Assembly: GCA_002269645.1 (NCBI GenBank)
Contig: NIVC01001686.1
Span: 1-64,000 of the forward strand
DNA length: 64,000 nt
Source: Macrostomum lignano
Taxonomy: Eukaryota
Direction of reading: 5' to 3'
Shown: positions 3,887-56,590 of the stretch, in pieces
Numbering within the stretch: position 1 is the first letter of the stretch
Layout: the number at the start of each line of letters is the position of its first letter
Position numbers and translations under genes: made by a program
The notes under the pieces: model-generated
Seen by the model: the letters and a program-made list of their open reading frames with translations, nothing else
Databases searched by the model: none
Told to the model about the DNA's origin: nothing

Positions 3887-3944
<58 letters not shown>

Positions 3945-3947
<3 letters not shown>

Positions 3948-4842: not shown

Positions 4843-5465
4843 AGCAGCAGCAGCAGGCAGCAGCCGCTATCCGTGCAGGCAGTCAGTCTATTTGTGAATT
4901 TTCTGGTGGATCTGAAGAAAACCCGTCCGGCACAGGATTAAAGAGAAAGAGACGATCTGTTTTGGGTGAGTATTATCTGCTGTAGAAGTATTGTACACCA
5001 GAGTACTTGTGTTACTTGGTAGAGCACAATTCAAAAGCAATGCAACAATCTCAGTGGCATTGTTGGGACACAAGCTACAAACGCAATGAATAGTAAACAC
5101 AGCCCAGCCTAGCTCAAGGCTAGTAATTTGTTGGGCATTTATTGGGACATTGCAGCCAGGCCTATTTTTTGAACAGCATTTGTTGGGTCGCACTTATTGG
5201 GACAATACTGATTCTAATCGCGACTACTTCTGAGTTCTGACTTTTCAAAACAGACCCAGCATTAGTTGAACACGTTCTATTAAAGGGTTCCTTTATAGCC
5301 TATTAATGATTACTAAAGCAAGCCTATCTTAATTGATTTCTTTTCCTCGCAGATTCTGAAGTCAGCACGCCAGCGACATGCCTAAGAGACAAGAATGCGC
5401 TTTAACGATCAGCAGCGAGCATTCTGATCTCGCCGCTGCATCCGTCATTTGGTTCACTTGCTGCT

Positions 5466-5536
<71 letters not shown>

Positions 5537-6143
5537 TATCCGTGCAGGCAGTCAGTCTATTTGTGAATTTTCTGGTGGATCTGAAGAAAACCCGTCCGGC
5601 ACAGGATTAAAGAGAAAGAGACGATCTGTTTTGGGTGAGTATTATCTGCTGTAGAAGTATTGTACACCAGAGTACTTGTGTTACTTGGTAGAGCACAATT
5701 CAAAAGCTATGCAACAATCTCAGTGGCATTGTTGGGACACAAGCTACAAACGCAATGAATAGTAAACACAGCCCAGCCTAGCTCAAGGCTAGTAATTTGT
5801 TGGGCATTTATTGGGACATTGCAGCCAGGCCTATTTTTTGAACAGCATTTGTTGGGTCGCACTTATTGGGACAATACTGATTCTAATCGCGACTACTTCT
5901 GAGTTCTGACTTTTCAAAACAGACCCAGCATTAGTTGAACACGTTCTATTAAAGGGTTCCTTTATAGCCTATTAATGATTACTAAAGCAAGCCTATCTTA
6001 ATTGATTTCTTTTCCTCGCAGATTCTGAAGTCAGCACGCCAGCGACATGCCTAAGAGACAAGAATGCGCTTTAACGATCAGCAGCGAGCATTCTGATCTC
6101 GCCGCTGCATCCGTCATTTGGTTCACTTGCTGCTGCACAAGCC

Positions 6144-27990: not shown

Positions 27991-29204
27991 TTACTCTCGC
28001 CTGTCGCTTCATCGCAAGCTGAAACATTCACTCAAAAATTCTCAACACAAATTTCAGCAATCTCTGCATTCTAATTGCAGACTTAGAAAAGCGTGCGATA
28101 ACAATGAGGGTCTTGTGTGGCCTATGCAAAAGAAATGAGAATAGATGCGCTTAGAGGACATTTGAATAGGTAAAAGCAATTGAGGCCTACGTAAACTGTA
28201 GAAAACTGTCACCTTGCCCTCCCACTGAGTCTGAATTCCCACTGAGTGTGAGTTTTCCTCCGCAAACTGTCCTTATTCATCAGCGGGCGCATCACTTTAT
28301 AGACTTTTTCTCGAGTGTTTTAACACAACCTACCCACTGACACAGCTTGAAGCCGCCTGAAATTCCTTTGAGTAATTAAAAAATTTTCATTACTCGTAGT
28401 TTTATGATAATATGAGGATTATTTAAGGATTACATGTAGGAAAATAGGGAGAGGAGAGAAAGGGGAGAGAGAGGGAGGGAGAAGAGACGAGGAGAGGGAC
28501 AGGTAGAGGGAGGAGGCAGAGAGGGAGGGGTAGAGGGAGAGAGGAGGGTGAGAGTCAGAGGAGTGGGAGAGGGAGAGAGAGAGAGACAGGGAGAGAAGGA
28601 GGGTGAGAGGGAGAGAGGTATGTGATGAATTTTAGTGTTATAAAATAAAATAAATTTTCAAGTTTAATCGAATACCATACGAATACAGACAAAGCAGTAA
28701 ATATGACTAATTAAACTAATTAAAAGGTCAAAAACAGCAACACTCCGAAGTATCTACTTTAAAAACAATTGAGTTTGTTTGGCATCGATCTCTATATTCA
28801 CTTTACCCCCGAGCTTCCCTCTCGCTCGTCAATAAAAGTTGAATTCATCCCGACAACGCAGCCCCAATCTGGGAGAATCTGGGGAGGAGAGATGCAGGAA
28901 GCCTTCTGCTCGGTCGGAGAGTTGAGTAGCTGCCTCATCAAATCAGAGAGCCGGGGTCATTTTCGCCGCTATTAAAAATGTCTTAAAACCGATATTATTT
29001 AGCTATCGCCTAGCTAAGCAGGTACATATATATGGGTGTTTTTTCAACCCAATATATCTGACTGGCAGGTGGGGATAGATCAGACAGGAATCTGATGAGG
29101 ATGATGAGAGAGCTGCTGCTGCTGCTGGTCAATCGAGTATGCTCGGCTTGTTCATTATATTAGAGTGACGGAACACTTCACAGCTGCTGCCCTCCAATCG
29201 TCTC

Positions 29205-29324
<120 letters not shown>

Positions 29325-29507
29325 CTGCTCCTTTCGTCAGATCGATGGACCGCAGGACATGCCTTGGATGTGAGGGGGAGGCAGGACATGGATAATGATG
29401 ACCCCTCACTCCATAGGAATTGGAGCGTTTATCTGTTGTCTTAAATTTGTGCTACTTTTCTTATTCTGAGGGAAAGAGAAGTAGACAGTTAAAGAATTAG
29501 ACAGCCA

Positions 29508-29897
29508 GGAGCTTGAGAAGTAGGCAGTTAGGAGCTTGAGAAGTAGGCAGTTAGGAGCTTGAGAAGTAGGCAGTTAGGAGCTTGAGAAGTAGACAGCTAG
29601 GAGCTTGAGAAGAAGACAGCTACGAGCTTGAGAAGCAGACAGTTACGATCTTGCGAAGTAGTCAGTTAGGAGCTTGAGAAGCAGGCAGTTAGGAGCTTGA
29701 GAAGTAGACAATTAGGAGCTTGAGAAGTAGACAGCTAGGAGCTTGAGAAGTAGACAGGAGCTTGAGAAGTAGACAATTAGGAGCTTGAGAAGTAGACAGT
29801 CTGGAGCTTGAGAAGTAGACAGTTACGAGCTTGAGAATTAGACAGTCTGGAGCTTGAGAAGTAGACAGTCTGGAGCTTGAGAAGTAGACAGTTAGGA
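29508..29897. repeat. 23-bp minisatellite (~17 copies)
   Basis: Unit ggagcttgagaagtagacagtta. Confidence 0.93.
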
Positions 29898-30379
29898 GTC
29901 AAAGAACTAGACAGCTTGCAGTTATAGAAGTAGACAAAAGTTTGAGAAGTACATGTAGATAGATAGTTGAGAAGTAGATGGTGGAGAATTGAGTAGAGGT
30001 AAGACTACCTACCAGCAAGATAAGGAGAGAAAGCATCAGTATGCAATGAGCAAACAGCCAATACAAATTAAAATTTATCATAAGGTATTACAATAGGAAA
30101 ATATTAATTTCTCAAAGTGCCCCTATCGCTGCCCTGAGACGCGGCATGGAATTCGTTTGTGTGCACTTCTTATGTGCGGGATTTCTGGTTAGAGACTTTT
30201 CAGGTTTACTTGTGGCAATTATTTTTTTTGCTTCTGGGTGGGAGCTTCTGCCCAGTGGATATGAGTAATGCTTTGCTTCCGGTAGGATAAATCCTCTTAG
30301 TCTCCAAAGCCCGCCGGTCCACGCAGCTTTTACCTTTATTAATTTGCTTATCTGGGATGCTGCTACTTATAGGTAGCTG

Positions 30380-30851
<472 letters not shown>

Positions 30852-31140
30852 CTTTCGCACGCCATCGCAGCCTTTACTAAGCTAAATAATTATTCCAACA
30901 GTGAACTGATTGCAGGACAAGGATAAATGGATAGATCCCCATCCCATTGTATTCCTGCTCCGCATTAATGCGTGTAACTGAATGATTCTAAAATTAGATT
31001 CGCTGTCGATGACAGAAGCAGCAGAGCTCGTACTGAATCAATAGATAATAATCGCGCGAAAAAAACAGTCGGGATGACAGACAGACAAAATAGCAGGCGA
31101 CGTCAACAAGCGGCTCCTGGATTAGGATATATCAAAAAAG

Positions 31141-31518
31141 AGTGGACCAGACAGACACAGAGTGGACCAGACAGACACAGAGTGGACCAGACAGACACAG
31201 AGTGGACCAGACAGACACAGAGTGGACCAGACAGACGCATACTGGACCAGACAGACGCATAGTGGACCAGACAGACGCATAGTGGACCAGACAGACACAG
31301 AGTGGACCAGACAGACACAGAGTGGACCAGAGTGATATAAAGTGGACCAGACAGACACAGAGTGGACCAGACAGACACAGAGTGGACCAGACAGACACAG
31401 AGTGGACCAGAGTGATATAAAGTGGACCAGACAGACACAGAGTGGACCAGACAGACACAGAGTGGACCAGACAGACACAAAGTGGACCAGACAGACACAG
31501 AGTGGACCAGACAGACAG
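31141..31518. repeat. 20-bp minisatellite (~19 copies)
   Basis: Unit agtggaccagacagacacag. Confidence 0.95.
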
Positions 31519-31821
31519 AACGGTTCGGATGGAAGCAGACAAATGATTTAAAGCGATTTAACTGGTCAGCTATACATGCAGTCTATTGGCTCAATGCTGC
31601 CCTTATCGTGGACAAATATTGATAAAACATACGTGCTACACTAATCTATATGCAGCTACATAACTGCCATCCCTTTTTCAATAGCATTTATTGTCAGAAA
31701 TTGTATGCGAAACTGCGGACCACTTGACCACTGCTGAACCTCCTGGCATTCGTTGGCGCAATGTCCCCGACTCTCTCCCTAGACCTAAAGATCCTGAGCT
31801 CGATTCCGAGCACACTCTACC

Positions 31822-33800
31822 AGCACCAAGGGATGTCAGCACCAAAGGATGTCAGCACCAAGGGATGTCAGCACCAAGGGATGTCAGCACCAAGGGATGT
31901 CAGCACCAAGGGATGTCAGCACCAAGGGATGTCAGCACCAAGGGATGTCAGCACCAAGGGATGTCAGCACCAAGGGATGTCAGCACCAAGGGATGTCAGC
32001 ACCAAGGGATGTCAGCACCAAGGGATGTCAGCACCAAGGGATGTCAGCACCAAGGGATGTCAGCACCAAGGGATGTCAGCACCAAGGGATGTCAGCACCA
32101 AGGGATGTCAGCACCAAGGGATGTCAGCACCAAGGGATGTCAGCACCAAGGGATGTCAGCACCAAGGGATGTCAGCACCAAGGGATGTCAGCACCAAGGG
32201 ATGTCAGCACCAAGGGATGTCAGCACCAAGGGATGTCAGCACCAAGGGATGTCAGCACCAAGGGATGTCAGCACCAAGGGATGTCAGCACCAAGGGATGT
32301 CAGCACCAAGGGATGTCAGCACCAAGGGATGTCAGCACCAAGGGATGTCAGCACCAAGGGATGTCAGCACCAAGGGATGTCAGCACCAAGGGATGTCAGC
32401 ACCAAGGGATGTCAGCACCAAGGGATGTCAGCACCAAGGGATGTCAGCACCAAGGGATGTCAGCACCAAGGGATGTCAGCACCAAGGGATGTCAGCACCA
32501 AGGGATGTCAGCACCAAGGGATGTCAGCACCAAGGGATGTCAGCACCAAGGGATGTCAGCACCAAGGGATGTCAGCACCAAGGGATGTCAGCACCAAGGG
32601 ATGTCAGCACCAAGGGATGTCAGCACCAAGGGATGTCAGCACCAAGGGATGTCAGCACGAAGGGATGTCAACACCAAGGGATGTCAACACGAAGGGATGT
32701 CAGCACCAAGGGATGTCAACACCAAGGGATGTCAACACCAAGGGATGTCAACACCAAGGGATGTCAACACCAAGGGATGTCAACACCAAGGGATGTCAAC
32801 ACCAAGGGATGTCAACACCAAGGGATGTCAGCACCAAGGGATGTCAGCACCAAGGGATGTCAGCACCAAGGGATGTCAGCACCAAGGGATGTCAGCACGA
32901 AGGGATGTCAACACCAAGGGATGTCAACACGAAGGGATGTCAGCACCAAGGGATGTCAACACCAAGGGATGTCAACACCAAGGGATGTCAACACCAAGGG
33001 ATGTCAACACCAAGGGATGTCAACACCAAGGGATGTCAACACCAAGGGATGTCAACACCAAGGGATGTCAGCACCAAGGGATGTCAGCACCAAGGGATGT
33101 CAGCACCAAGGGATGTCAACACCAAGGGATGTCAGCACCAAGGGATGTCAACACCAAGGGATGTCAACACCAAGGGATGTCAACACCAAGGGATGTCAAC
33201 ACCAAGGGATGTCAGCACCAAGGGATGTCAGCACGAAGGGATGTCAGCACCAAGGGATGTCAGCACCAAGGGATGTCAGCACCAAGGGATGTCAACACCA
33301 AGGGATGTCAACACCAAGGGATGTCAGCACCAAGGGATGTCAACACCAAGGGATGTCAACACCAAGGGATGTCAACACCAAGGGATGTCAGCACCAAGGG
33401 ATGTCAGCACCAAGGGATGTCAGCACCAAGGGATGTCAGCACCAAGGGATGTCAGCACCAAGGGATGTCAGCACCAAGGGATGTCAGCACCAAGGGATGT
33501 CAGCACCAAGGGATGTCAGCACCAAGGGATGTCAGCACCAAGGGATGTCAGCACCAAGGGATGTCAGCACCAAGGGATGTCAGCACCAAGGGATGTCAGC
33601 ACCAAGGGATGTCAGCACCAAGGGATGTCAACACCAAGGGATGTCAGCACCAAGGGATGTCAGCACCAAGGGATGTCAGCACCAAGGGATGTCAGCACCA
33701 AGGGATGTCAACACCAAGGGATGTCAACACCAAGGGATGTCAACACCAAGGGATGTCAGCACCAAGGGATGTCAGCACCAGGGGATGTCAGCACCAAGGG
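31822..33800. repeat. 16-bp minisatellite (~124 copies)
   Basis: Unit cagcaccaagggatgt; source of three ~710 aa spurious ORFs. Confidence 0.98.
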
Positions 33801-34231
33801 GCGCCTTCAGATCGTCTGTTACCTTTACTTGTTGGCAGTTTGGCTGCCAAACTACGAGCTAATTACATTCTTGCGATGGTTAGAATCCTTGATGAAATTT
33901 AACACCTTTAATATTGAGACTCTGAACTTAATTTTCTTTGTTCCCTTGCAGATTAACTTACATAGTATACAGTTATGAATTTCTTTATAAATCCTAAATT
34001 TCAGTTTTGAAACCCGATCTCACTGATCAATTATTTAATCTGATCTGAACGGAAGTTGTCAAAAAATTTGATACTTTGCAACTTTAAACAAAGCTTTTGA
34101 AAACCTCAAACAATGGGGAGCAAAACTTTGGGAACTTTGGGCTCATCAGTGCTAACGAAATCCAACAGGTATCAAGGGGCAACGTTGCATAGAGATCTGA
34201 AGCACCTGTTTGCTTTAGACAATAGATGGAG

Positions 34232-34766
34232 ACACCTGTTAGATATTAGACTAAGACAACTGTTAGATATTAGACTGACACAACTGTTAGATATTAGACT
34301 GAGACAACTGTTAGATATTAGACTAAGACACCTGTTAGACAGGAGAGTGAGACACCTGTTAGATAACAGGTTGAGACACATGTTAGATATCATGTTGAGA
34401 CACCTGTTAGATATCAGGTCGAGACACCTGTTAGATATCAGGTTGAGACACCTGTTAGATATCAGGTTGAGACACCTGCTAGATATCATGTTGAGACACC
34501 TGTTAGATATCATGTTGAGACACCTGTTAGATATCAGGTTGAGACACCTTTTAGACATGAGAGACGCCTGTTAGATATTAGACTGAGACACCTGTTAGAT
34601 ATTAGACTGAGACACCTGTTAGATATGAGAGTGAGACACCTGTTAGATATGAGAGTGAGACACCTGTTAGATATTAGACTGAGACACCTGTTAGATATTA
34701 GACTGAGACACCTGTTAGATATTAGACTGAGACACCTGTTAGATATTAGACTGAGACACCTGTTAG
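34232..34766. repeat. 24-bp minisatellite (~22 copies) just upstream of the ion-channel gene
   Basis: Unit gagacacctgttagatattagact. Confidence 0.93.
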
Positions 34767-34893
34767 ATGCTATAATAAGAATCCCTGTTAGATCGATCAT
34801 GAAATTCCAGAATTTTTCAGTCGCCAAGCAGTCGCAATCCAGCAGGAATATGAAACAGTTAAAAAAACAAACAATAAACAAATTTCAGTCGCT

Positions 34894-37800
34894 ATGCGAT
34901 CATTTCTTCGCGACCGTCAGCGACTGAACGCGGCGGCGGCGGCGACAGCAGCGGCGACTTCTTCGCAGCTGTCGAGCGCAGAAGTCGGCGACGAAGCCGA
35001 CATGTCGAGGCGGCGCGCGTCCTGCTTCCAGCACGGCAATCACGGAGGTGACGATAGCGATGAAGAGCAGAGGCTGATCAAGGTAACAGTTTCTTTATTC
35101 CGGCATTGATTTTTGTTTATCTTGCCTTGTAAAATTTGTTATAATTTACGAATGCGAAAGGAATTCTAATTAAAATTCTCTTAAAAGGTTTACAAAAGTT
35201 AAATGAAGCAAAACCATCTCGAAAGACAGATTGTCTACATCAGCTCCGGCTTGTTGAGAGAGGCGATGGCGTCTGGATGAGGACTGAATGCTGGAGAGAC
35301 TGGCTAAGGATGTCCAGCAGTTGAGGTTTCCCCAATGTCGAGGCTTGATCAGTTTGCAACACGTGTCCATAGTCACATTGTGCCACCTGTTGAAGGTCCA
35401 GAAGCTCCGCTTGGGTGAAGTCTAGTGACCAAGGAAGTCAACCAAGGAAGTTGACCATGTGGTCAACGTGCTAAGGCGCAGTGCTGATTGGCGCACAGGG
35501 GTACACTGAATACACTGGCGCTTATGGGAAAAATCCGACCTTCTGGCAGTGCTATTGAATATCTCGACGGCCCGGAAGGCTGGCGAATTGATTCTCGTTT
35601 GACAAGGTTGCGCAACAAAAGTTAGCCCTAAAGAAAGTTATTTGATTTCGTGTGCCTGGGTTTCTCCGAAATGGCTTGGTACTTGTATCCCTACTGATAA
35701 AACGAGCCATTTAAGATTTTCTAGGAAACAAAGTCTTATTTCTAAGAAATAAGAAACAAAATTAATTTAAAAAGTGGCATGCCATCGACGAATCGCAGTC
35801 CTACACCCCAGACATCGTAAAAACAAGTTAAAAAGACGTTAAAGAAGTCAACACGCCCAAATTCTAGCAGTTTTTGAAGGCCTAATTAAGGACTAAGGCC
35901 GATTGACGGACTTTTTTGCTTTTATTCATTCCCGACTTAATCTTTTCTTCTACATGTTGAACCTACAAAAAGAAAATGTCAACTGGTTCGTGCTTTGTCA
36001 GAGATACTCGTAGTTGCACATTTTTAGACTACTCTATTTTCCAAAAATTGGAAGCATTAATTACAACAAAGTTTTGAATTTTTTAAATTTAAACTTTACA
36101 TCACATCGTGACATCTATACTGGCTAATTAAATCTATTTGCAAATATATGAGATTCAATTTTGATAGTTTATGTTTCAATTTACTTAAAAATTAAACTTT
36201 TTTCTATCATAAAAAAACAAAAAAAATCTGAATCGAAAGAAGTGAATTGAAAAATACAAACTCAAACAAATTATGTACAACAAATGGCACCTCAGACTAA
36301 CAAGGGATACTTAGGTGATTCACCTCTCAAACAGGTTACACTGTCCAATCAAACGGGTTACACTGTCCAATCAAACGGGTTACACTGTCCAATCAAACGA
36401 GTTACACTGTCCAATCAAACGGGTTACACTGTCCAATCAAACAGGTTACACTGTCCAATCAAACAGGGTACACTGTCCAATCAAACGGGTTACACTGTCC
36501 AATCAAACAGGGTACACTGTCCAATCAAACGGGTTACACTGTCCAATCAAACGGGGTACACTGTCCAATCAAACAGGTTACACTGTCCAATCAAACGGGT
36601 TACACTGTCCAATCAAACGGGTTACACTGTCCAATCAAACAGGGTACACTGTCCAATCAAACGGGTTACACTGTCCAATCAAACAGGGTACACTGTCCAA
36701 TCAAACAGGTTACACTGTCCAATCAAACGGGTTACACTGTCCAATCAAACGGGTTACACTGTCCAATCAAACAGGTTACACTGTCCAATCAAACAGGTTA
36801 CACTGTCCAATCAAACGGGTTACACTGTCCAATCAAACAGGTTACACTGTCCAATCAAACAGGGTACACTGTCCAATCAAACGGGTTACACTGTCCAATC
36901 AAACGGGTTACACTGTCCAATCAAACGGGTTACACTGTCCAATCAAACAGGTTACACTGTCCAATCAAACAGGTTACACTGTCCAATCAAACGGGTTACA
37001 CTGTCCAATCAAACGGGTTACACTGTCCAATCAAACAGGTTACACTGTCCAATCAAACAGGTTACACTGTCCAATCAAACGGGTTACACTGTCCAATCAA
37101 ACGGGTTACACTGTCCAATCAAACGGGTTAAACTGTCCAATCAAACAGGTTACACTGTCCAATCAAACGGGTTACACTGTCCAATCAAACAGGTTACACT
37201 GTCCAATCAAACGGGTTACACTGTCCAATCAAACGGGTTACACTGTCCAATCAAACGGGTTACACTGGATTTCAAGCTCAATGCAGAGTGTTTCTAATGT
37301 ACACGCCCGAAATAATTCGAAAACCTCTTCCAACCCTCACTGAAGCGTCAAGTGTACATCTGCGTGGTGTTCATGAAAATCGGCGAAATTGACACCATCA
37401 AGGAGCAATTCGCTGCAGACGTGCTGATCAAAGCCAAATGGAGAGAACCGGAGCTTGACCATATGAACGCTCAGGAGGGGAGGCTTGTGAGTTATAAAAA
37501 TCCTATTTCTCAAGTTCCTACCTCTCATGTTTCCCACATCCTAATTCCCATACCACAAATTTCCCACACTCTAATTCCCATCCTACAAGTTTTCCCACAC
37601 CCCAATTACCATCCCACAAGTTTTCCATACCCTAATTATCATCCCACAAGTTTCCTACCCCCTAAATCCCATATCACAAGTTTCCCACACCCTAATTCCC
37701 ATCCTAAAAGTTTCCTTCACTCTAATTCCCATACCACAAGTTTCCCACACTCTAATTCCCATGCCACAAATTTCCCACACTCTAATTCCAATCCTACAAG

Positions 37801-40800
37801 TTTCCCACACCCCAATTACCATCCCACAACTTTCCTACTCCCTAAATTCCATAGCACAAGTTTCCCACACCCTAATTCCCATCCTAAAAGTTTTCCTACA
37901 CCCTAATTCCCATCCTAAAAGTTTTCCCACACCCTAATTCCCATCCTAGAAGTTTTCCTACACTCTAATTCCCATACCACAAGTTTAGTTATAAAAGAAG
38001 TCCTACGATAAATATCTGAACTTTCTGCGTCCACTCCAGCAATACGACTGGGCTAATAGCTGGACCCCGAAGCTCTACATCGAGAACACCATTGGCGAGA
38101 GCAAGGAGAACGTCTACCAGATGATCTCCTTCAACGAAGTCGGTCACGCGTTTTTATTCGAGAAGCGGAGAGTGTCCGGTGTATTCTTGGAAAATCTCGA
38201 GCTCAACCATTTCCCGTTTGATGTCCAGGTGAGGATGCGATTTGGGTAAGGAGTCAGGTGAATGATTGGGTCAGGAGTCACGTGAATGATTGGGTCAGGA
38301 GTCAGGTGAATGATTGGGTCAGGAGTCAGGTGAATGATTGGGTCAGGAGTCAGGTGAGCGATTGGGTCAGGAGTCAGGTGAATGATTGGGTCAGGAGTCA
38401 GGTGAGCTATTGGGTCAGGAGTCAGGTGAATGATTGGGTCAGGAGTCAGGTGAGCTATTGGGTCAGGAGTCAGGTGAATGATTGGGTCAGGAGTCACGTG
38501 AATGATTGGGTCAGGAGTCAGGTTAATGATTGGGTCAGGAGTCAGGTGAGCGATTGGGTCAGAAGTCAGGTGAGCTATTGGGTCAGGAGTCAGGTGAATA
38601 ATTGGGTCAGGAGTCAGGTGAGCGATTGGGTCAGGAGTCACGTGAATGATTGGGTCAGGATGCAGGTGAGCGATTGGGTCAGGAGTCAGCTGAATGATTG
38701 GGTCAGGAGTCACTTGAATGATTGGGTCAGGAGTCAGGTGAATGATTGGATCAGGAGTCAGGTGAATGATTGGGTCAGGAGTCAGGTGAATGATTGGGTC
38801 AGGAGTCAGGTGAATGATTGGGTCAGGAGTCAGGTGAATGATTGGGTCAGGAGTCAGGTGAGCGATTGGGTCAGGAGTCAGGTGAATGATTGGGTCAGGA
38901 GTCAGGTGAGCGATTGGGTCAGGAGTCAGGTGAGCTATTGGGTCAGGAGTCAGGTGAGCTATTGGGTCAGGAGTCAGGTGAGCTATTGGGTCAGAAGTCA
39001 GGTGAGCTATTGTGTCAGGAGTCAGGTGAGCTTTTGGGTCAGGAGTCAGGTGAATGATTGGGTCAGGATGCAGGTGAATGATTGGGTCAGGAGTCAGGTG
39101 AATGATTGGGTCAGGATGCAGGTGAATGATTGGGTCAGGAGTCAGGTGAACGATTGGGTCAGGAGTCAGGTGAGCGATTGGGTCAGGAGTCAGGTGAGCT
39201 ATTGGGTCAGGAGTCAGGTGAGCGATTGGGTCAGGAGTCAATTGAACTATTGGTGAGGACTCGGGAATCGGGTGAATGATTGGGTCAGGAGTCAGGTGAG
39301 CGATTGGGTCAGGAGTCAATTGAACTATTGGTGAGGACTCGGGAATCGGGTGAATGATTGGATCAGGAGTCAGGTGAGCGATTGGGTCAGGAGTCAATTG
39401 AACTATTGGTGAGGACTCGGGAATCGGGTGAATGATTGGGTCAGGAGTCAGGTGAATGATTGGGTCAGGAGTCAGGTGAATGATTGGGTCAGGAGTCACG
39501 TGAATGATTGGGTCAGGAGTCAGGTGAATGATTGGATCAGGAGTCAGGTTAATGATTGAGTCAGGAGTCAGGTGAATGATTGGGTCAGGAGTCAGGTGAA
39601 TGATTGGGTCAGGAGTCAGGTGAATGATTGGGTCAGGAGTCAGGTGAGCGATTGGGTCAGGAGTCAGGTGAATGATTGGGTCAGGAGTCAGGTGAGCGAT
39701 TGGGTCAGGAGTCAGGTGAGCTATTGGGTCAGGAGTCAGGTGAGCTATTGGGTCAGGAGTCAGGTGAGCTATTGGGTCAGAAGTCAGGTGAGCTATTGTG
39801 TCAGGAGTCAGGTGAGCTTTTGGGTCAGGAGTCAGGTGAATGATTGGGTCAGGATGCAGGTGAATGATTGGGTCAGGAGTCAGGTGAATGATTGGGTCAG
39901 GATGCAGGTGAATGATTGGGTCAGGAGTCAGGTGAACGATTGGGTCAGGAGTCAGGTGAGCGATTGGGTCAGGAGTCAGGTGAGCTATTGGGTCAGGAGT
40001 CAGGTGAGCGATTGGGTCAGGAGTCAATTGAACTATTGGTGAGGACTCGGGAATCGGGTGAATGATTGGGTCAGGAGTCAGGTGAGCGATTGGGTCAGGA
40101 GTCAATTGAACTATTGGTGAGGACTCGGGAATCGGGTGAATGATTGGGTCAGGAGTCAGGTGAGCGATTGGGTCAGGAGTCAATTGAACTATTGGTGAGG
40201 ACTCGGGAATCGGGTGAATGATTGGGTCAGGAGTCAGGTGAGCGATTGGGTCAGGAGTCAATTGAACTATTGGTGAGGACTCGGGAATCGGGTGAATGAT
40301 TGGGTCAGGAGTCATGTGAGCGATTTGATAAGAAGTCATGAGACAAATCACGATAAAAAAGCGCTCAGGTATATAGTTTCTATTTCAGATCATTACTAAC
40401 ACATCCAACAGCAGGCCTCCATGAAACGCACCAGCGGATTGGGATCTGGCTAATTATATATCATAGTTACAGTTGTGCTCCATTAAAAAAATACCCCAGT
40501 CAGCAGGTAACTGAAACTCCAGACAGGGAGATAGAGAGACATTGGGAAGAGATTTTTTTAGTCGGGAAATGTGAACGTTTTTAGATGATTTGCCAATTTA
40601 TTTGATGGGACTTTACGTGCACCAGTAGTTAGTCGCAAATATGATCATATATTAGATTGCCGAGATTCGTAATTAAGTCATGCATCAGCAATCGGGCTGA
40701 GAAGTTTTGGCGCAATTAGACTATGGGTCCGTCCTAACATATATGATATAGGGATTTATAAGGTGTTTAATGGCTTTGCAATAGATAACCAGGCGCTTCA

Positions 40801-43800
40801 TCTCTTGGGCAGCACCCAAAGACATTCCCAAAGACAGCCTCCCTTTCCTAAAGACAGCGTCCCTTTCTCAAAGACAGCGTCCCTTTCTCAAAGACAGCGT
40901 CCCTTTCTCAAAGACAGCGTCCCTTTCCCAAAGACAGCGTCCCTTTCTCAAAGACAGCGTCCCTTTCTCAAAGACAGCGTCCCTTTCTCAAAGACAGCGT
41001 CCCTTTCTCAAAGACAGCGTCCCTTTCTCAAAGACAGCGTCCCTTTCCCAAAGACAGCGTCCCTTTCTCAAAGACAGCGTCCCTTTCTCAAAGACAGCGT
41101 CCCTTTCTCAAAGACAGCGTCCCTTTCCCAAAGACAGCGCTTCCTCCCAAAGACAGCGCTCCCTCCCAAAGAAAGCACTCCCTCCCAAAGACAGCGTCCC
41201 TTTCTCAAAGACAGAGTCCCTTTCTCAAAGACAGCGTCCCTTTCTCAAAGACGCGTCCCTTTCCCAAAGACGCTCCCTCTCAAAGAGCCTCTTCACGGCA
41301 ATCGGTTCTAGAACCAGAATAAATTCGAGTTCTGTAACCAGAACCAGTGTGAAATAAGGAGCTTCGAACCCATTTTATGTTTGACAGTCTTTACAATTTA
41401 ATTTTGTCGTTTTTTGACTTTGTTTCCTCTTGGATATGACAAAAACGGAATAATTATACAATAATAATAGAAAATTGACGATTTCAAATACATTTTACTG
41501 TTAAAGTGTAAACATGACAACGGTTCGAGAAAATTTCTCGAACCATATTCCAGAACCTGAACCATGTTCCGGAACTGATTCTGTTTTTCGAACCATCGAT
41601 ATGAAGAGCGTCGAACTCGTTCGGAACTGGTTCTGTTTTTCGAACCGGCGATATGAAGAGGCTCAAAGACAGCGCTCCCTCCCAAAGACAGCGTACTTTC
41701 GCAAAGACAACAACCCTTACCAAATGCAGCACCCCTCCCTTACGACAGCAGCCCTTTTCAAGGACACGGTTGTTACCTAAGGACAGCACAAAAAACTTTT
41801 GATATGAGAAGAAGCAAAAACCACTTTCTAAATATTTCCAACACTATAGTCCGCCTCTATTCGTGTTTCTCAGGACTTAACTATCACTGTGGCTTCGAAT
41901 CTGTCGTCGGCAGAAATTCGTTTAGTGAACGACCCAGATGAGCCGCACAGAATCAATAAGCAATCTTTTATCGGTGAGTCGTATTTGAAACGATATTAGC
42001 TATCAATTAAAATTCAGTTGAGCTCCAGTTCACCCTGATGCGATTGGGTTGCAGCTCTGAGCTGCCGTAGAAATACAGGACCCTACACAGTGCCAGAACT
42101 GTACAAGGCCGTTGGCTGCCACACCTGGCCACCTTACTGCAACGGGTCCAGAGTATTTCCATATGCAGGTACATGTAAACGCGAATTACCTGCAAAGATT
42201 CAGCTTGCTTGTGTACTGATCGTTGCGTGCGCTTTTATAACGCACGTTAGGATCCGGCCCTCCTGGTTGCACAAGCAAACCCAAAATCGACATGCAACCA
42301 CCCTGACATGTTCATGTCAAACTGTACCAATTTGGCACGAACACAACTTGAACATTTCAATCAATCATTTTGCAAATGAGCAGATGAGCAAGAGTGGTTC
42401 CTGTACAAGCACATCGAGACGGAGCAGAAAGAGCTGGCATGCGAGTACACGGACCCTGGCTCGATCCGGCCAGCCCTGTCTGTCAAGTGCAGAGCGGCTC
42501 GGAGACCGGCTTATTTTATTTGGAATATTTTTCTGGTCACGGTAAGATGCTGATTGTTTGGGTGTGATCAATCACTGTCTAGCTAAAATGACTCTGACTC
42601 TCAAACCACACGACCCCAATCTGGCGTTGTGGTGCGATTAACGCCAGCAGGACCAGTTTACACATGCCTGACGATTAAAAGTAACACCCTGTGCGAGAGT
42701 GTGCATGAGTGCAGTGCCTGAGTTCAGTATTGGCGCACCTAAATGTGCTCAGGAGGGAAGAATTGCCTCAGCGCTAGTGGTCCGGGACGATGTCTCCCGA
42801 AGCTCTGCGCCAGCTCAGCCGTCCTGTTTATATTATTATTTTAAATATTATTAGTAACTGTTGCTCGAAAATATATTCGTCCGTGAGGCTATAGTGTGCT
42901 TATATTTATTTTATAAGCGGAACAATGGCTTTTTAGAGTCGAGAAGAGTCTCAATAAAATCTATATATAAATTCGGGGGCTATTTAGGCACTTAATTAAC
43001 TCTCTCAATATGAATTTACTTCATCACAATTGCATTCAATTAATTCTCTCGTCGCCTACTGCAGTTCCTAATCTGCTCCCTGTCGCTAGTGACATTCGCG
43101 GTGAAGCGCGATCTGCCTCAGAACCGGCTCCAGCTGACGTTCACTCTCGTGCTCACTTTGGTCGCCTTTAAATTTGTCGTCAATCAATGCCTGCCTAAGA
43201 TATCCTACTTAACTTATTTGGTAAGTAGCAAATTAAGCGTTTTTTCAGTAAATTTACGATTATCATTTTTACTCAAAATAAATAATTTCGATATTTTTCG
43301 GACCAGGACAAGTACGTGATCAGTAGTTTGTTTATCCTGACACTGATCTGTCTCTGGCACGGACTCATAGTAGTTATTGACAAGATCATTCTGGAGCACT
43401 TCGGCATGGTTTGGGACAACCTTGAGACCTACGTCATCATTGGCATGGCGTTCAGCTATGTGGCTTACAATGTTGGCTTTGTAATCATGATCTTTTCTGT
43501 GGTAAGTTACACTGAAGACACAAAGATCGAATGAATACTACTGTAGTTGTAGTATGATAACTTTCCTAATATTGTCGTTCGCATTTCAAACCCCAGGCAT
43601 GCAAGAGACGGAGAATCATGAAACAAAAGGACAGAGAGTACACGGTAAGCTGATCCAGGCTACATAATAACATATACATGTACTAATTGTTAAGTCCCTG
43701 TGTTTGGTAAGGGTTAATGATAGCACCTTTCAGTAGGTACGTATAGGTGACAGGGTTAATGATACTATCTTCGATCAAGCACCTGTCAATAAGTCTGTAG

Positions 43801-44053
43801 GTATGAGGGTTAATATGATACTATCCTTAGGCGCATGTCTGCTAGTCTGTATAGGTTACGGGGGGCTAGTACTATCCTCCCAATGAAGTGGTGCCTGTAA
43901 ATACTGTCCAGTTTACTAAAATTGGCAATGTAGGAGCGAGTGAAAATGCAGATGCGCTCAAAAGGAATGCGAGCGAAACGGATGCTGCAACAGACGCATC
44001 AGCTGCACGAGGTGAAGGAGAACGGACAGTCGCCTGCGGTTGCATTCATATAA
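34894..44053 (+). CDS. Cys-less (Pro-loop) pentameric ligand-gated ion channel subunit, 9 exons, ~431 aa
   Basis: Exons 34894-35082, 37346-37486, 38040-38228, 41874-41973, 42384-42541, 43065-43220, 43307-43501, 43597-43644, 43934-44053, all GT-AG with consistent phases. Motifs: KIGEIDTIKEQFAADV..KAKWREPELD; WTPKLYIEN; GVFLENLELNHFPFDVQ|DLTITVAS (Pro-loop without Cys); EQEW; RRPAYFIWNIFL (M1); NRLQLTFTLVLTLVAFK (M2); LPKISYLTYLDKY (M2-M3); M4. The first and last exons are less certain than the core. Confidence 0.9.
36332..37267. repeat. 22-bp minisatellite in channel intron 1 (~42 copies)
   Basis: Unit gttacactgtccaatcaaac(g/a)g. Confidence 0.96.
37530..37985. repeat. Degenerate 30-bp minisatellite in channel intron 2
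   Basis: Unit tttcccacaccctaattcccatcctaaaag. Confidence 0.9.
38229..40325. repeat. 24-bp minisatellite starting at the intron-3 donor, with an internal ~786-bp duplication
   Basis: Unit gggtcaggagtcaggtga(atg/gcg/gct)att. The variant order ending at 39256 is repeated ending at 40042. Confidence 0.95.
40820..41760. repeat. 20-bp minisatellite interrupted by a MITE
   Basis: Unit aaagacagcgtccctttctc at 40820-41284, resuming degenerately from 41665. Confidence 0.9.
41285..41664. mobile_element. PIF/Harbinger-like MITE (380 bp)
   Basis: 11-bp TIRs gagcctcttca...tgaagaggctc, a 3-bp flanking duplication (aaa/aaa) and subterminal gaacc/ggttc motifs shared with the element at 46718. Confidence 0.7.
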
Positions 44054-44409
44054 ACGTAAAAACAATGACTTTTTTCTCAATTCCCAAAATCTTATTCTGC
44101 ATGTACTTCGTAATTTTGATAGTATATGTACCTGCTTTTACACGATGTACATGTAACTAAGGTTGTTGGTATCGAAACTTTTTTGAACTCGACTTTAAGA
44201 ATACTTTTAAAAACCCAGTGATATTACTCGTATATAATAAGTCATAATTATAGATGTATGACCTGCACGAATTGCAGCAATTTGTACCGATTTGCATAAA
44301 TTTGGATAACCTGAAGAATGTACATATATGAATGGCTATGCCACTGCAACACTGTAAAATGATTGTTTTCTTGATAGAGGAAACTTCCACCAAAGAATTT
44401 TCGCCAAGC

Positions 44410-46437: not shown

Positions 46438-47331
46438 TAGGGATTCCAAAATCCCGACATTTTACAATCCCGGGATTGAATAGTCCCGAAATCCCGATGC
46501 TGTTGAAATCCCGGGATTCAAAATCCCGGAATCCCGGTGCTTTTGCAATCCCGGGATTAAAAATCCCGGGATTCGATTCCCAAAAAAATCCCGGGATTCA
46601 AATCCCGGATTTTTGGCCCCAATCCCGGGATCCCGGGATCCCGGGATTGGAATCCTAAGACGGACTGTGCGGCGTGCCGCGTGCAGTAGTCATGGTCTCG
46701 CGACTCTCAGAGTCTCAGGGCCTTTTCATATTACCAATTCCAGAACCAGAATCGGTTCGGAATTCCAAGAAAAACAGCAGTATAACTATTAAACTCTGTT
46801 AATATTTGACTGCCTTAACAGCCTCACTTTGCACGATTTTTCACTTTCTTTTTGGCGACTGTCATTCAATGATAAAAACTTTATAGCACGTATCTCCCTC
46901 TAGTTATGGAGACAAAAAGTTATACTTCACAAATTGGTTCTGGTTCTGGAACCAGAACAAGCACTATGAAAAGGCCCTCAGTCTCGTCTCGTGGTGTAAA
47001 ACGAAAAAAAGTTAAAATTATCTATCATTTACAGTTCACATTAACAATTTTTAGCTCAATTAGGACAGGAGCTTTGCAAAATGTTTAACGTTTCATTGAG
47101 AAACAGCAAAAACAAATAAATGTTTTATTATTCAAATAAACGTTTAGACTTTAAATTATCTAATTTAGGCATCGAAAGGTTGTTCTAATCCCGGACCAAT
47201 CCCGGGATTAAGGCCTTGAAATCCCGGGATCCCGATCCCGGACTTTTGCAATCCCGGGATTAGAAATCCCGGGATTCGATTCCCAAAAAAATCCCGGGAT
47301 TCAAATCCCGGATTTTTGGCCCCAATCCCTA
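46438..47331. mobile_element. Non-autonomous hAT-like element (894 bp) with aatcccgggatt subterminal palindromes
   Basis: Termini tagggatt...aatcccta; exact 8-bp target duplication ccctcagg at 46430-46437 and 47332-47339. Confidence 0.85.
46718..46977. mobile_element. PIF/Harbinger-like MITE (260 bp) nested in the hAT element
   Basis: Perfect 13-bp TIRs gggccttttcata...tatgaaaaggccc; 3-bp TSD tca/tca. Confidence 0.85.
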
Positions 47332-50000: not shown

Positions 50001-51901
50001 ATGTCGTCCTCCATGTCTGGCTGGCTCACTTCCTCCAACATCTCTGGACGGGAGGATCTGGTGCACATTGCGAAGCTCGCCGAGCAGGCTGAGCGATATG
50101 ACGACATGGCGACTGCCATGAAGGCCGTGACTGAAAAAGGTCAGGAGCTGGGTAATGAGGAGAGAAATCTGCTCTCTGTTGCCTACAAAAACGTTGTCGG
50201 CGCTAGGAGGTCTTCGTGGCGTGTGATCTCTAGCATCGAGAGCAAGACCGAGGGCAGCGAGAGGAAGCAGTCAATGGCTAAAGAATACCGTCAGAAGATT
50301 GAGAGCGAACTGCAGAGGATCTGCAAGGAAGTGTTGGTAAGTCGCTCATCATTTTGAAAGTAAATTGAAATTTATGTAACGTTGTTATTATGGCATGGAG
50401 CTTGTCGCTTATTGCCATATTGTATAGTACTAGTATCTTATTAATTATTAATTTAAAAAGTTCACAGGTAATGTCAATGACAATGTTCAGTGACTGATCA
50501 ATAATAATATTAGCCCTTTAGCATTAGGGAATTAAAAATACAAATTCTCATAGGTAGGGGCCTAGGCTAGTATCAATGCCAATTGCTAATAGTATCATCT
50601 AATATGGCAAAATCTATTGCTAGTACTGGTATCAATTAGACATGTCTTGTGATTCTTAAATTTAAGATTAGGCCTAAGACAATTATATTTTAATTTTTGT
50701 TACACTTAAGCTATAAGGTAAATATAGTCAATTTAATTTAATAATACTTGTTGCTCTAAATCTATATTATTCATTATTACAATAAAATAATTTTAGTAAG
50801 TATAGATGATTCTTAGACTGTTTTATTGTTAAACTATTGATTAAATGATAAAGTAATATATTTGTGATAAATTTAAAGAAAACATATCTATAAAGACTAT
50901 ATCAATGATATGGCCTATCATAGCTTCAGTTTTTTTGTTGAGTATATTTTTTTGTAATTCTTGCATGCTTAATCAAATTCATGAATATTATATAATTAAT
51001 AAAGTAATCCTATAAATAACTGAATAATTCAAATTAATTTTTTTAAATGTTAGCAAAAATTTGGTTTTGTTGAACTCAACTTTCAATGCATGAAGACTGA
51101 AATCTGTATAGTAAGGTGCAACATTAAGGATTAAGCTTGAAAATTTGCATGATTCTGTTTGTTTGATCCCATTTTTTGCTTCTAGTGCATGTTGGTACAA
51201 TAATGTTTGCTGTGTTATGCCATTTTTTCAACTAACATTTTTAGAGCCTCTTGGATGACTACCTAATTAAGAATGCTCCTAACTCGGAGTCGAAGGTTTT
51301 CTACTTCAAGATGAAGGGCGATTATTTCCGCTACCTAGCCGAGGTGGCCACCGGCGACGAGCGCAAGAATGTTGTCGACAGCTCCGAGGGCGCCTACAAG
51401 TCCGCCACTGACCACGCCGAAACTGAGCTGGCCACCACCCATCCCATCCGCCTTGGCCTGGCCCTCAATTATTCAGTGTTCTTCTACGAGATCAAGAACG
51501 ACCCGGAGCGGGCTTGCCAACTGGCCAAGAAGGTGGGTGATTTGTTTATTTCACGATGGCTTGCTGTAAATTTTACTGGCCTTTTAAGCACTTGGATGAT
51601 TTTAAAGTTCTCGTCGCACTTTTTTTATACAGGCCTTCGACAATGCGATTGCGGATCTCGACGATCTGGCCGAAGAGTCCTACAAGGATTCCACTCTGAT
51701 AATGCAGTTGCTGAGGGACAATCTGACTGTAAGTATATTAGCAAATTTATTAAATTCTGTCCAAGAGATCAATTTCTTTTCATTTAATATAAATTATTAC
51801 ACAATACACTTTTCTGATTAATTGTTTCTCCAAACCCTTCAAATTTGCAGCTCTGGACCTCCGAGCAGGGCGGCGACGATGGCGAACAGCAGGACAACTG
51901 A
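50001..51901 (+). CDS. 14-3-3: 14-3-3 protein, proximal isoform/copy A (256 aa)
   Basis: Exons 50001-50336, 51245-51532, 51633-51728, 51851-51901, all phase 0 and GT-AG. Motifs [76 protein letters not shown]. Confidence 0.96.
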
Positions 51902-54552: not shown

Positions 54553-56590
54553 TCGGGAGGGCGAGAGAGAGTCAAGATCAGTTGGAAATTCTCGTCTCTG
54601 CATGTACATCCACAAATATTTGCAGCACAAATTAAGTATTTGCCTCACTGATCTCAACGCCGCAGACCGCGGTCCTCAAACCATCCTCAAAGTACTTGTC
54701 AATCCCTCGCACACGCAGGTGGCAGTTGGCGAGCAGCGCACAGACGTGGTCGACAAGAGCATGGAGGCTTACAAAGCGGCTACGAAAAGTGCGGAAGAGA
54801 AACTGCCCACCACTCATCCGATTCGGCTGGGCCTGGCGCTGAACTTCTCCGTTTTCTACTACGAGATCCGCAGCGAGCCAGACCAGGCCTGCCAGCTCGC
54901 CAAGAAAGCCTTCGACGAGGCCATCGCCGAGCTTGATAATCTGCCAGAGGATTCTTACAAGGATAGCACGCTCATTATGCAGCTGCTTCGGGACAACCTC
55001 ACGGTAAGGCTGCTCACATGTTGTTTTTTATTGTAGCCGAAAATACCATTTTAGAAGATTTTCGCCACAGGAATCCCATATTGGATGATTTTAGCTACAG
55101 GAATCCCATTTGGGAGATTTTAGCGACAGGATTCCCATTTTTGATTATTTTAGCTTCAGAAATCCCATTTTGGATGATTTTAGCTACAGGAATCCCATTT
55201 TAGGATTTTTATCCAGGAATCCCTACTTTGGGAGATTTTAGCGACAGGAATCTCATTTTGGGAGATTTTAGCCACAGGAATCCCATTTGGGAGATTTTAG
55301 CCACAGGATTCCCATTTTGGATGATTTTAGCCACCTAGGATTCCCATTTTTGGATTTTTTATCCAGGAATCCCTACTTTGGGAGATTTTAGCGACAGGAA
55401 TCCCATTTTGGATGATTTTAGCGACAGGAATCCCATTTTGGATGATTTTAGCTACAGGAATCCCATTTTGGATGATTTTAGCTACAGGAATCCCATTTGG
55501 GAGATTTTAGCGACAGGATTCCCATTTTGGATGATTTTAGCTACAGGAATCCCATTTTGGGAGATTTTAGCTACAGGATTCCCATTTTGGATGATTTTAG
55601 CTACAGGAATCCCATTTTTGGATTTTTTATCCAGGAATCTTTACTTTGGGAGATTTTAGCGACAGGAATCCCATTTTAGGAGATTTTAGCTACAGAAATC
55701 CCATTTTGGATGATTTTAGCTACAGGATTCCCATTTTTGGATTTTTTATCCAGGAATCCCTACTTTGGGAGATTTTAGCGACAGAAATCTGATTTTGGGA
55801 GATTTTTAGCGAAATGAGTCGTGATTTTAGCCAAGAATCCCAATTAGTGTGGATGAGGAGGAGTGGGTAGGAGGGGCAGATTCCGGAGGGAATGAGGGGC
55901 GGATTCCGGAGGAAATGAGGGGATCCAGGAATCCGTTTTGGGAGATTTTAGCTACAGAAATCCCATTTTGAATGATTTTAGCTACAGGAATCCCATTTTC
56001 GGAAATTTTTAGCGACAGGAATCCCATTGTGGGAGATTTTATCCAGGAATCCCTTTTTGGGAGATGTTAGCGACAGAAATCCCATTTTGCGAGATTTTAA
56101 GTGACAGGAATCCCATTTTGGAAGATTTTAGCCACAGGAATCCCATTTTGGGAGATTTTTAGCGACAGGAATCCCATTGTGGGAGATTTTATCCAGGAAT
56201 CCCTTTTTGGGAGATGTTAGCGACAGAAATCCCATTTTGGGAGATTTTATCCAGGAATTCTTACTTTGGGAGATTTTAGTGACAGGAATCCCATTTGGAA
56301 GATTTTTAGCGAAAGGAGTCCTATTTTGGATGATTTTAGCCAAGAATCCCATTTTGGGATTTTTTGTATAGGAATCTCATTACCGACGGGAATCCCACAT
56401 TGGAAGATTTTTAGCGACAGTAATCCCATTTTGGAAGTCTCCTTTCAGCCAATACTGCACCACTAAACCAAATCTTTAAGTGTAAACTACATGTTGCTCA
56501 TAGTTTATCCGCAATCCTGTTTTACAATAACAGCTGTGGACATCTGAGCAGGATGCTGGAGAAGATGCTGATGGCGGGGATCATCATTGA
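53705..56590 (+). CDS. 14-3-3: 14-3-3 C-terminal exon set B (no separate N-terminal exon seen; probably spliced to exon 50001-50336)
   Basis: Exons 53705-53803 (DLLDEHL...DYYRYLAE), 54719-55003 (VAVGEQR...RDNLT) and 56534-56590 (LWTSEQ...HH-TGA). All are phase 0, open and have canonical splice sites. Confidence 0.9.
53995..54545. repeat. (GA)n microsatellites and GA-rich repeats in a 14-3-3 B intron
   Basis: GA runs at ~54085-54160, 54295-54342 and 54455-54545, with agcagatttgggagggtaag spacers. Confidence 0.93.
55050..56430. repeat. Degenerate 30-bp minisatellite in the last 14-3-3 B intron
   Basis: Unit gattttagc(t/g)acaggaatcccattttggat. Confidence 0.92.

Follow-up and report, generated by a model that had tools for sequence, protein, structure and literature searches.

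The DNA analyzed here, referred to below as the window, is a stretch of 64,000 nucleotides (nt) from Macrostomum lignano (positions 1 to 64,000 of the forward strand of contig NIVC01001686.1, assembly GCA_002269645.1). At positions 34894-44053 of its plus strand lies a gene that is best explained, with good confidence, as a genuine and intact animal gene that encodes one subunit from a described family of pLGICs (pentameric ligand-gated ion channels) whose ligand-binding domain (LBD) is devoid of the Cys-loop disulfide (Cys-less pLGICs). The topogenic signals common to this family furthermore bear on the side of the membrane at which that domain is placed.

Structure of the Channel-Subunit Gene

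The analysis started with a three-frame translation of positions 34800-44300 (+), after which the junctions were read. In this region, pLGIC-like coding segments form a chain with minisatellite-rich DNA between them, and the gene was rebuilt from them independently of a preliminary description of this DNA, whose start and end coordinates (34894 and 44053) were reproduced exactly. The model consists of nine exons separated by eight introns, all with GT-AG borders (seven in phase 0 and one in phase 1), and its 1296-nt coding sequence translates into 431 amino acids (aa) plus a stop codon. The exons and the minisatellites within introns 1-3 are listed below, with M1 to M4 for the transmembrane helices.

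34894..35082 (+), exon 1: ATG and a 63-aa hydrophilic N-terminal extension (MRSFLRDRQRLNAAAAATAAATSS...), without a signal-peptide-like hydrophobic core
37346..37486 (+), exon 2: beta1-beta2 with the hallmark of the family, KIGEIDTIKEQ (in the beta1-beta2 loop, at the gating interface); intron position common to Sparganum
38040..38228 (+), exon 3: loop A motif WTPKLYIEN up to residue 16 of the Pro-loop (VFLENLELNHFPFDVQ); E161 in place of Cys1, P169 kept
41874..41973 (+), exon 4: last residues of the Pro-loop (DLTI; L175 in place of Cys2), loop B ASNLSSAE without an aromatic residue, loop F HRINKQSFI
42384..42541 (+), exon 5: phase-1 junction completing D207; DEQEW, beta9, short loop C, pre-M1 VKCRAARRP, first half of M1
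43065..43220 (+), exon 6: second half of M1, M1-M2 loop, M2 (PQNRLQLTFTLVLTLVAFKFVV), M2-M3 loop LPKISYLTYL
43307..43501 (+), exon 7: M3, 16-aa M3-M4 loop (43379-43426), M4
43597..43644 (+), exon 8: 48 nt, coding exactly for the basic post-M4 motif ACKRRRIMKQKDREYT
43934..44053 (+), exon 9: C-terminal tail of 39 aa, basic and variable, then the TAA stop; weak polypyrimidine tract at the acceptor
36327..41286, minisatellites in introns 1-3: 22-mer in 43 copies (36327-37267) and 30-mer in 15 copies (37529-37986)
Further arrays in the same introns: 24-mer in 85 copies (38242-40319) and 20-mer in 23 copies (40825-41286)

The gene spans 9160 bases, of which 3939 (43%) are tandem repeat. At the 5´ end, the proposed ATG is preceded by an in-frame stop codon (34798-34800), and the best 10-residue Kyte-Doolittle (KD) window of exon 1 reached 1.3. 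A good splice acceptor (aaacaaatttcag^TCGCT, with ^ for the splice point) was found at 34870-34893, 5 nt upstream of this ATG, and a 5´ untranslated region intron or an unrecognized upstream exon may precede exon 1. A first exon coding for a signal peptide and ending in a phase-0 donor was sought in 28000-37345; outside the repeats, there were only two candidate loci, both weak, made up of three overlapping open reading frames (ORFs; MMTPHSIGIGAFICCLKF and MEFVCVHFLCAGFLVRDFSGLL), which are neither supported nor excluded as a first exon.

Pro-Loop and M3-M4 Loop

The Pro-loop VFLENLELNHFPFDVQDLTI (residues 158-177) extends across the junction of exons 3 and 4 (38181-38228 + 41874-41885). When aligned on FPxD, the positions of the two cysteines of the Cys-loop disulfide (C-x13-C) are occupied by E161 and L175, and F168-P169-F170-D171 carries the invariant proline of the F/YPxD motif (beta6-beta7 loop). 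The same residues prevail throughout the family, where logos of approximately 247 sequences gave 100% for P169, 94% for E161 and 96% leucine at the position of L175. Loop C (ACEYTDPGS) contains a single, non-conserved cysteine and no vicinal pair. Between the hydrophobic cores of M3 and M4 lie the 16 aa DKIILEHFGMVWDNLE, with one Lys or Arg, instead of the long cytoplasmic loop with a basic MA helix that canonical Cys-loop receptors have. The preliminary description had claimed a signature loop with the proline and neither cysteine, a loop C without vicinal cysteines and an M3-M4 loop of about 16 aa, all of which reappeared in the rebuilt model; it had overlooked the 55-aa tail that follows M4.

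Fold and Family Membership

Among Pfam domains, Neur_chan_LBD matched the protein above its cut-off of 26 bits (36.7 bits, E = 3.9e-9), and Neur_chan_memb matched it below its cut-off of 28.1 bits (22.9 bits, E = 1.2e-4). In a phmmer search against the sequences of the PDB, the bacterial channel ELIC came out on top (3.4e-18), with glycine receptors (GlyR) near 1e-10. In a separate database search for relatives, matches to homologues reached 7e-172. A family profile built from 62 members likewise placed ELIC first among solved structures (3.1e-23, 85 bits), followed by GABA-A gamma2 (69 bits) and GlyR (67 bits). An AlphaFold2 (AF2) monomer predicted from the family alignment (predicted local distance difference test, pLDDT, 83; predicted template modeling score, 0.74) comprised a beta-sandwich at residues 64-246 and helices at 248-271, 277-301, 308-339 and 344-401; residues 27-60, immediately before beta1, are disordered and, as in prokaryotic channels, no helix precedes beta1. 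Foldseek matched this model to chains of GABA-A, GlyR, ELIC, DeCLIC and sTeLIC at approximately 1e-19, with template modeling scores of about 0.7, the GABA-A and GlyR chains being ranked first. The hidden Markov model (HMM) searches that the preliminary description had suggested as a check returned matches far beyond chance, and the predicted monomer has a pLGIC fold.

The best relatives were those from the cestodes Sparganum and Spirometra (75-76% identity), from the monogenean Cichlidogyrus (76%) and from Mesocestoides (72%), with further relatives at 40-58% identity in nemerteans, molluscs, a brachiopod, annelids, rotifers, Macrostomum and schistosomes. The best 120 relatives listed were of the same kind, i.e., Cys-less pLGICs, and all named ones were spiralian. 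The window protein itself had no entry in the database. An exhaustive profile search retrieved 747 clusters (50% identity) at E ≤ 1e-30; the best 150 of these, all with E < 1e-68, contained family members only, and every named one that was checked was spiralian.

A Cys-less metazoan clade, composed mostly of Lophotrochozoa together with a platyhelminth group, had been described earlier (Jaiteh, Taly & Henin 2016, PMC4795631), and among the top matches of our family profile was the Schistosoma mansoni protein A0A5K4EMP5 (P0243), given as a Cys-less example of the schistosome clade by Johnson et al. 2023 (PMC9874803). According to the latter study, vertebrates, insects and C. elegans lack the Cys-less family, which it proposes as an anthelmintic target. 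Since the clade is already in the literature, the window gene adds a member to it and not a new kind of channel. The preliminary description had assigned the protein to a scattered invertebrate Cys-less clade with an ELIC/GLIC-like architecture and an unknown ligand. Membership and the likeness to ELIC, the best-scoring solved structure by sequence, were upheld; the clade, with its 747 clusters, proved to be Spiralia-wide rather than scattered.

The window protein has in common with the metazoan Cys-less clade, which includes the schistosome clade and the planarian gabrg3L genes, the replacement of the Cys-loop flanks by a polar and a hydrophobic residue, the retention of FPxD and the lack of a second Cys loop, and it falls within the lophotrochozoan/platyhelminth range of that clade. 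Compared with the schistosome members, it belongs to a short-loop subgroup that has orthologues in cestodes, a monogenean, nemerteans and molluscs.

Sequence Constraint and Intron Conservation

At all 36 alignment columns with at least 90% conservation among the other family members, the window protein carries the consensus residue. Conservation included the coupling and pore residues R246 (pre-M1, 100% in the family logos), L289 (9´, 99%) and P303 (M2-M3, invariant in the alignment), as well as the elements that couple the LBD to the transmembrane domain, namely GEIDTIKEQ in beta1-beta2, the Pro-loop ENLELNHFPFDVQD, CRAARRP before M1 and LPKISYLTYLDK in M2-M3. Comparison with the Sparganum orthologue gave a nonsynonymous divergence (dN) of 0.17, a saturated synonymous divergence (dS; LWL85 2.2) and identities of 0.79, 0.89 and 0.39 at the first, second and third codon positions, respectively; LWL85 and the codon-position identities were used because the NG86 estimate of dN/dS failed on the saturated dS. 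These values indicate that the gene is under strong purifying selection.

The Sparganum orthologue has introns at all eight positions, with exon boundaries that match those of the window gene exactly. In the nemertean Tubulanus, at least five of the eight positions are identical (DVQ^DLT, L(V/I)T^FLIC, TYL^DKY, x^AC(K/R)RR and EY(T/M)^(E/D), with ^ for the intron), the first two introns lie within 1-3 codons of those of the window gene, and only the SFI^DEQ intron is missing. The 48-nt post-M4 exon is also found in both Sparganum and Tubulanus. The introns are ancient, and the gene itself is old and functional.

Bacterial contamination or recent horizontal transfer of an ELIC-like gene would fit with ELIC being the nearest solved structure, but its probability is negligible: it is excluded by the eight spliceosomal introns, from which the preliminary description had already excluded contamination and most of which turned out to be common to different phyla, including both the cestode and the nemertean, and it is at odds with an identity to ELIC of only about 20%, with eukaryotic neighbors that include 14-3-3 coding stretches reading as split exons, with the signal peptide, tail and charge pattern by which ELIC-like bacterial proteins differ, and with the eight introns and 55-aa tail found here in place of an intronless prokaryotic gene with a Sec signal peptide and an end just after M4.

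A decaying pseudogene, or a chance run of ORF fragments among minisatellites, is likewise very improbable. The repeat content of the gene span, the weak acceptor of exon 9 and the unsupported exon 1 are features that such an explanation would account for. Against it stand a frame that remains open over nine exons with canonical splice sites, the 36 conserved family columns kept without exception, a divergence at third codon positions far above that at first and second positions, and exon boundaries identical to those of the Sparganum orthologue.

Pore and Ligand Site Compared with ELIC

ELIC (Erwinia/Dickeya; PDB 2VL0 and 2YN6), the best match among solved structures, resembles the window protein in having neither a Cys-loop disulfide nor an N-terminal helix and in its short M3-M4 loop. 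HMMER alignment of the two gave R0' L Q2' L T F T6' L V L9' T L V A13' F K F16' for M2 of the window protein and R L Q T S F T L M L T V V A Y A F for that of ELIC; hence, the pore-facing residues 2'Q, 6'T, 9'L, 13'A and 16'F are identical. At the -1' position, the glutamate of ELIC is replaced by asparagine, and the -2' residue is glutamine (Q278-N279-R280). Across the family, Gln accounts for 56% and Glu for 19% at -2', and neither -2' nor -1' is acidic in the window protein. Its PQNR before M2 contrasts with the PENR of schistosome members, which carry Glu at -2' (Johnson et al. 2023, PMC9874803) and are described with long M3-M4 loops. With Asn at -1', where ELIC has Glu, and Gln at -2', the sequence does not reveal the charge selectivity, which may be weak or may depend on a partner subunit of the PENR type.

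The aromatic cage of ELIC, made up of Y38, F133, Y175 and F188 (in agreement with the chain numbering in the alignment), aligned to L90, a gap, C226 and a gap, respectively, loop alignments at 20% identity being soft. Loop C is six residues shorter than that of ELIC, and loop B reads ASNLSSAE. Since the ELIC cage is not conserved, a cation-pi amine site is unlikely, and the ligand is probably not a classical amine transmitter.

Strong conservation was located at the domain interface and in loop F, comprising GEIDT-KE (beta1-beta2), ENLEL-FPFDVQD (Pro-loop), F-DEQEW (loop F/beta9), CRAARRP (pre-M1) and LP(K/R)ISYLTY-DKY (M2-M3). An acidic cluster at this interface is formed by E77, D79, E83, E161, E164, D171, D207 and E210, where D207 aligns with D158 of ELIC, a part of its divalent-cation site, and E210-W211 with E159-W160. 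This pattern suggests the acidic cluster as the best-conserved candidate sensor, with control by divalent cations or protons. The subunits would assemble as a pentamer and gate an ELIC-like pore.

A different origin would be that of a "secondary" Cys-less protein, i.e., a canonical anionic subunit (GABA/Gly/GluCl-type) that has lost its cysteines, like the nematode lgc-34/Dirofilaria group. Anionic receptors such as GlyR and GABA-A indeed have in common with the window protein the fold, the loop A motif WxPxxxxxN, the pre-M1 Arg, the 9' Leu and LPK(V/I)SY in M2-M3 (LPKISY here, LPKVSY in GlyR/GABA-A), their chains ranked first in Foldseek, and the family profile scored GABA-A gamma2 and GlyR approximately 16-20 bits less than ELIC. 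The family was placed outside the canonical clades on the basis of HMM scores and of trees from the literature, and the 85 bits of ELIC only moderately exceed the 69 bits of GABA-A gamma2. However, the window protein differs from GlyR and GABA-A in that it has neither Cys-loop nor loop C disulfides, no signal peptide, no alpha1 helix (in the AF2 model, beta1 is not preceded by an N-terminal alpha-helix), no long M3-M4 loop, PQNR where these receptors have PAR and an opposite bias of Lys and Arg residues. Further, the pore face is ELIC-like, and among solved structures, the protein and the profile alike match ELIC best by sequence. The Cys pair of loop C, absent here, is kept by anionic receptors and by the nematode secondary group (PMC9874803), and published trees set the lophotrochozoan/platyhelminth group apart as a separate Cys-less clade (PMC4795631, PMC9874803). 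We therefore consider a secondary loss of cysteines improbable.

Topogenic Signals of the Family

To score signal peptides, the region upstream of beta1 was examined over its first 60 residues, and an 8-residue KD window of at least 2.3 was counted as positive; this hydropathy proxy, which is not SignalP, was calibrated on GlyR and ELIC-like sets. A 10-residue window was dropped because of its poor separation of GlyR (medians of 1.15 vs. 1.91, with only 19% of GlyR at 2.0 or above). Lys and Arg residues (K+R) were counted on the side of the ligand domain (pre-M1, M2-M3 and the 15 aa that follow M4) and on the opposite side (M1-M2 and M3-M4). The following values were obtained:

Signal-peptide-like positive, Cys-less family: 5/129 (4%)
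Signal-peptide-like positive, vertebrate GlyR alpha: 73% of 95
Signal-peptide-like positive, bacterial ELIC-like: 89% of 106
K+R on the ligand-domain side vs. the other side, Cys-less family: 11 vs. 3
K+R on the ligand-domain side vs. the other side, GlyR: 6 vs. 13
K+R on the ligand-domain side vs. the other side, ELIC-like: 4 vs. 5

By this proxy, the best 8-residue window of the window protein itself remained below the threshold. None of 19 homologues that were read had a signal peptide; all of them showed a hydrophilic, variable N-terminal extension and the basic post-M4 motif. N-terminal extensions in the family are 25-600 aa long, hydrophilic and rich in Lys and Arg. Of three intron-free transcript contigs, two (L001 and L002) carry an upstream in-frame stop with no ATG between it and the start Met; in the third one (L003), a single upstream in-frame ATG adds six residues and no signal peptide.

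The ligand-domain side was the richer one in K+R in all 206 family sequences, and the charge across M1 (+5 in the N-flank, +2 in the C-flank) favors an N-in orientation. The post-M4 tail, 20-140 aa long in the family, opens with the basic motif [KR][KR]RRxMxxKD[RK]EY, whose columns are conserved at 65-90% (about 210 sequences) and which, in the AF2 model, continues the M4 helix without a break up to residue 401 with a pLDDT above 90. ELIC-like proteins, by comparison, differ from the window protein in their signal peptides, in an end after M4 with a median of 4 aa and no K/R (115 proteins) and in 4 K/R in the M3-M4 loop.

With regard to features of secreted domains, the ligand domain of the family contains one conserved cysteine (C242, 74%) without a conserved partner and no other column with at least 20% Cys. 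It contains no conserved N-glycosylation sequon either (mean of 0.57 sequons per domain), compared with one conserved sequon and two disulfides in GlyR. In 18 members with a long M3-M4 loop, sequons amounted to 2.87 per 100 aa in that loop vs. 0.33 in the ligand domain. Neither of the two studies on the clade (PMC4795631, PMC9874803) mentions a missing signal peptide, a post-M4 motif or a reversed charge bias, and the family-level pattern, i.e., signal peptide lost, positive charges relocated and a conserved basic M4 extension on its own microexon, is new.

Several further observations were made on the termini of family members. Molluscan orthologues (P0020, P0022, P0025, P0027, P0030, P0033, P0039 and P0050; loci L002 and L003) have a short conserved peptide, (M)ASVAYNFM(V)V or TAIAYSFM(A/T)M, located at the N-terminus or close to it and preceding a stretch rich in Ser, Arg and Lys; the peptide is not present in flatworm and nemertean proteins. 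A mitochondrial presequence, considered for the Arg/Ala-rich N-terminus of the window protein, was rejected, as N-termini are not conserved across orthologues. Some members are oversized (P0241 from Pinctada, 1034 aa; P0243 from S. mansoni, 1136 aa; P0252 from Helobdella, 873 aa; P0309 from Aplysia, 1264 aa), with 300-860 domain-less aa before the beta-sandwich, two pLGIC stretches or a C-terminal DUF4706. For ten large members, Pfam detected no domain in the long extensions at the N-terminus. Some of the oversized members are probably fused gene models, and in one leech model, the C-terminal DUF4706 likely stems from such a fusion of predicted genes.

Orientation of the Ligand-Binding Domain

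The rules of membrane topogenesis take into account the lack of a signal sequence, a large and foldable N-terminal domain, the cytosolic location of the more positive flank and, in general, the positive-inside bias. Under these rules, the absence of a signal peptide, the positive charges on the LBD side and the basic helix that continues M4 together predict an N-in/C-in topology. Judging from these features, we propose, at what we regard as an even chance, that the whole spiralian Cys-less pLGIC family is inserted N-in/C-in, with both the beta-sandwich and the basic post-M4 helix in the cytosol. The short M1-M2 and M3-M4 loops would then face the outside or a lumen, and the channel would be gated from the cytosol, be it in the plasma membrane or in that of an organelle, with the acidic interface cluster as a candidate sensor of Ca2+ or protons. 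If so, the location of the domain in a reducing compartment would readily account for the missing Cys-loop disulfide and the lost glycosylation sites.

The same gene and family may instead adopt the conventional orientation, in which an extracellular beta-sandwich reaches the lumen without a cleavable signal peptide or by means of unannotated 5´ exons, and the window protein would be an ordinary orphan receptor at the cell surface that binds an extracellular ligand, which is what the preliminary description had assumed. We hold this to be a serious possibility, somewhat short of an even chance. To our knowledge, every characterized pLGIC has an extracellular or periplasmic ligand domain, and we know of no pLGIC of N-in/C-in orientation. 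Pre-M1 arginines occur in all pLGICs, hence a part of the charge bias is inherited. Some paralogues with a long M3-M4 loop (P0088 and P0092) have a basic stretch before M4 that resembles the canonical cytoplasmic MA helix. In addition, PMC9874803 (citing Ross 2018) and PMC8602322 describe planarian homologues (gabrg3L genes) as being expressed together with pkd1L-2 in putative mechanosensory neurons and report seizure-like movement, sensory defects and altered fission behavior upon their RNA interference.

Other points, too, weigh against a cytosolic LBD. The orientation argument is statistical and comes from a crude hydropathy proxy, and not from SignalP or DeepTMHMM; many N-termini in the family are gene predictions. 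As for the window gene itself, exon 1 receives no sequence support from homologues, which makes the 5´ end provisional, and weak signal-peptide-like ORFs with phase-0 donors lie 4.7-5.5 kb upstream. The enrichment of sequons in the M3-M4 loop is weak and comes from 18 related, low-complexity loops. Apart from these functional hints from planarian homologues, the literature searched yielded no functional, expression or localization work on members of the Cys-less clade, no deorphanized member and no report on their signal peptide or topology.

The conventional orientation, in turn, has to be reconciled with the lack of a signal-peptide-like segment in 96% of the 129 members scored, when the two control sets were 73% and 89% positive, and with the three transcript contigs bounded by an upstream in-frame stop, none of which codes for a signal peptide. 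Nor is it readily compatible with N-terminal extensions of such hydrophilic, Lys/Arg-rich character, or with the loss of positive charges from the M3-M4 loop and their gain in the post-M4 tail, which extended to 206 of 206 members.

Genomic Surroundings

The window as a whole is marked by minisatellites, of which 26 arrays with periods of 13-40 nt and up to 220 copies, those within the gene included, are distributed over 11767-63665 and occupy about 37% of the window; these arrays mimic long ORFs on both strands. The other features are the following:

3828-4679 (+): 283-aa ORF in a GC-richer block (4001-6000), Ala/Pro-rich, with a 20-residue poly-Gln run
46460-46647: cluster of short repeats on a palindromic CCCGGG core (40-mer in 2.7 copies, 25-mer in 1.9 copies and ATCCCGGG in 3.2 copies)
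50001-50357 and 51251-~51541 (+): first 14-3-3 coding region
54719-55036 (+): second, separate 14-3-3 coding region
61931-62784 (-): two adjoining ORFs of hydrophobic, transporter-like sequence

Pfam matches to 14-3-3 were obtained with E values of 2.7e-34, 2.5e-42 and 1.6e-41, and this downstream pair looks like tandem 14-3-3 genes, the first of them split by an intron of about 0.9 kb. The impression of a monocarboxylate or major facilitator superfamily transporter at 61931-62784 was left unconfirmed, with no Pfam match to these ORFs. The only Pfam match of the 283-aa ORF was a weak one to TFIIA, caused by the poly-Gln run.

Implications

The window gene provides one more member for a clade that has been known since 2016 and that is without a reported ligand, ion selectivity or localization in the literature searched. 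If the N-in/C-in orientation proposed here is true, these proteins would be the first pentameric ligand-gated channels to be gated from the cytoplasmic side, and the assumption that all pLGICs sense extracellular ligands would be overturned. The same orientation would make clear how the Cys-less family can dispense with the Cys-loop disulfide, and deorphanization screens would have to shift from bath-applied transmitters to inside-out patches and intracellular messengers.

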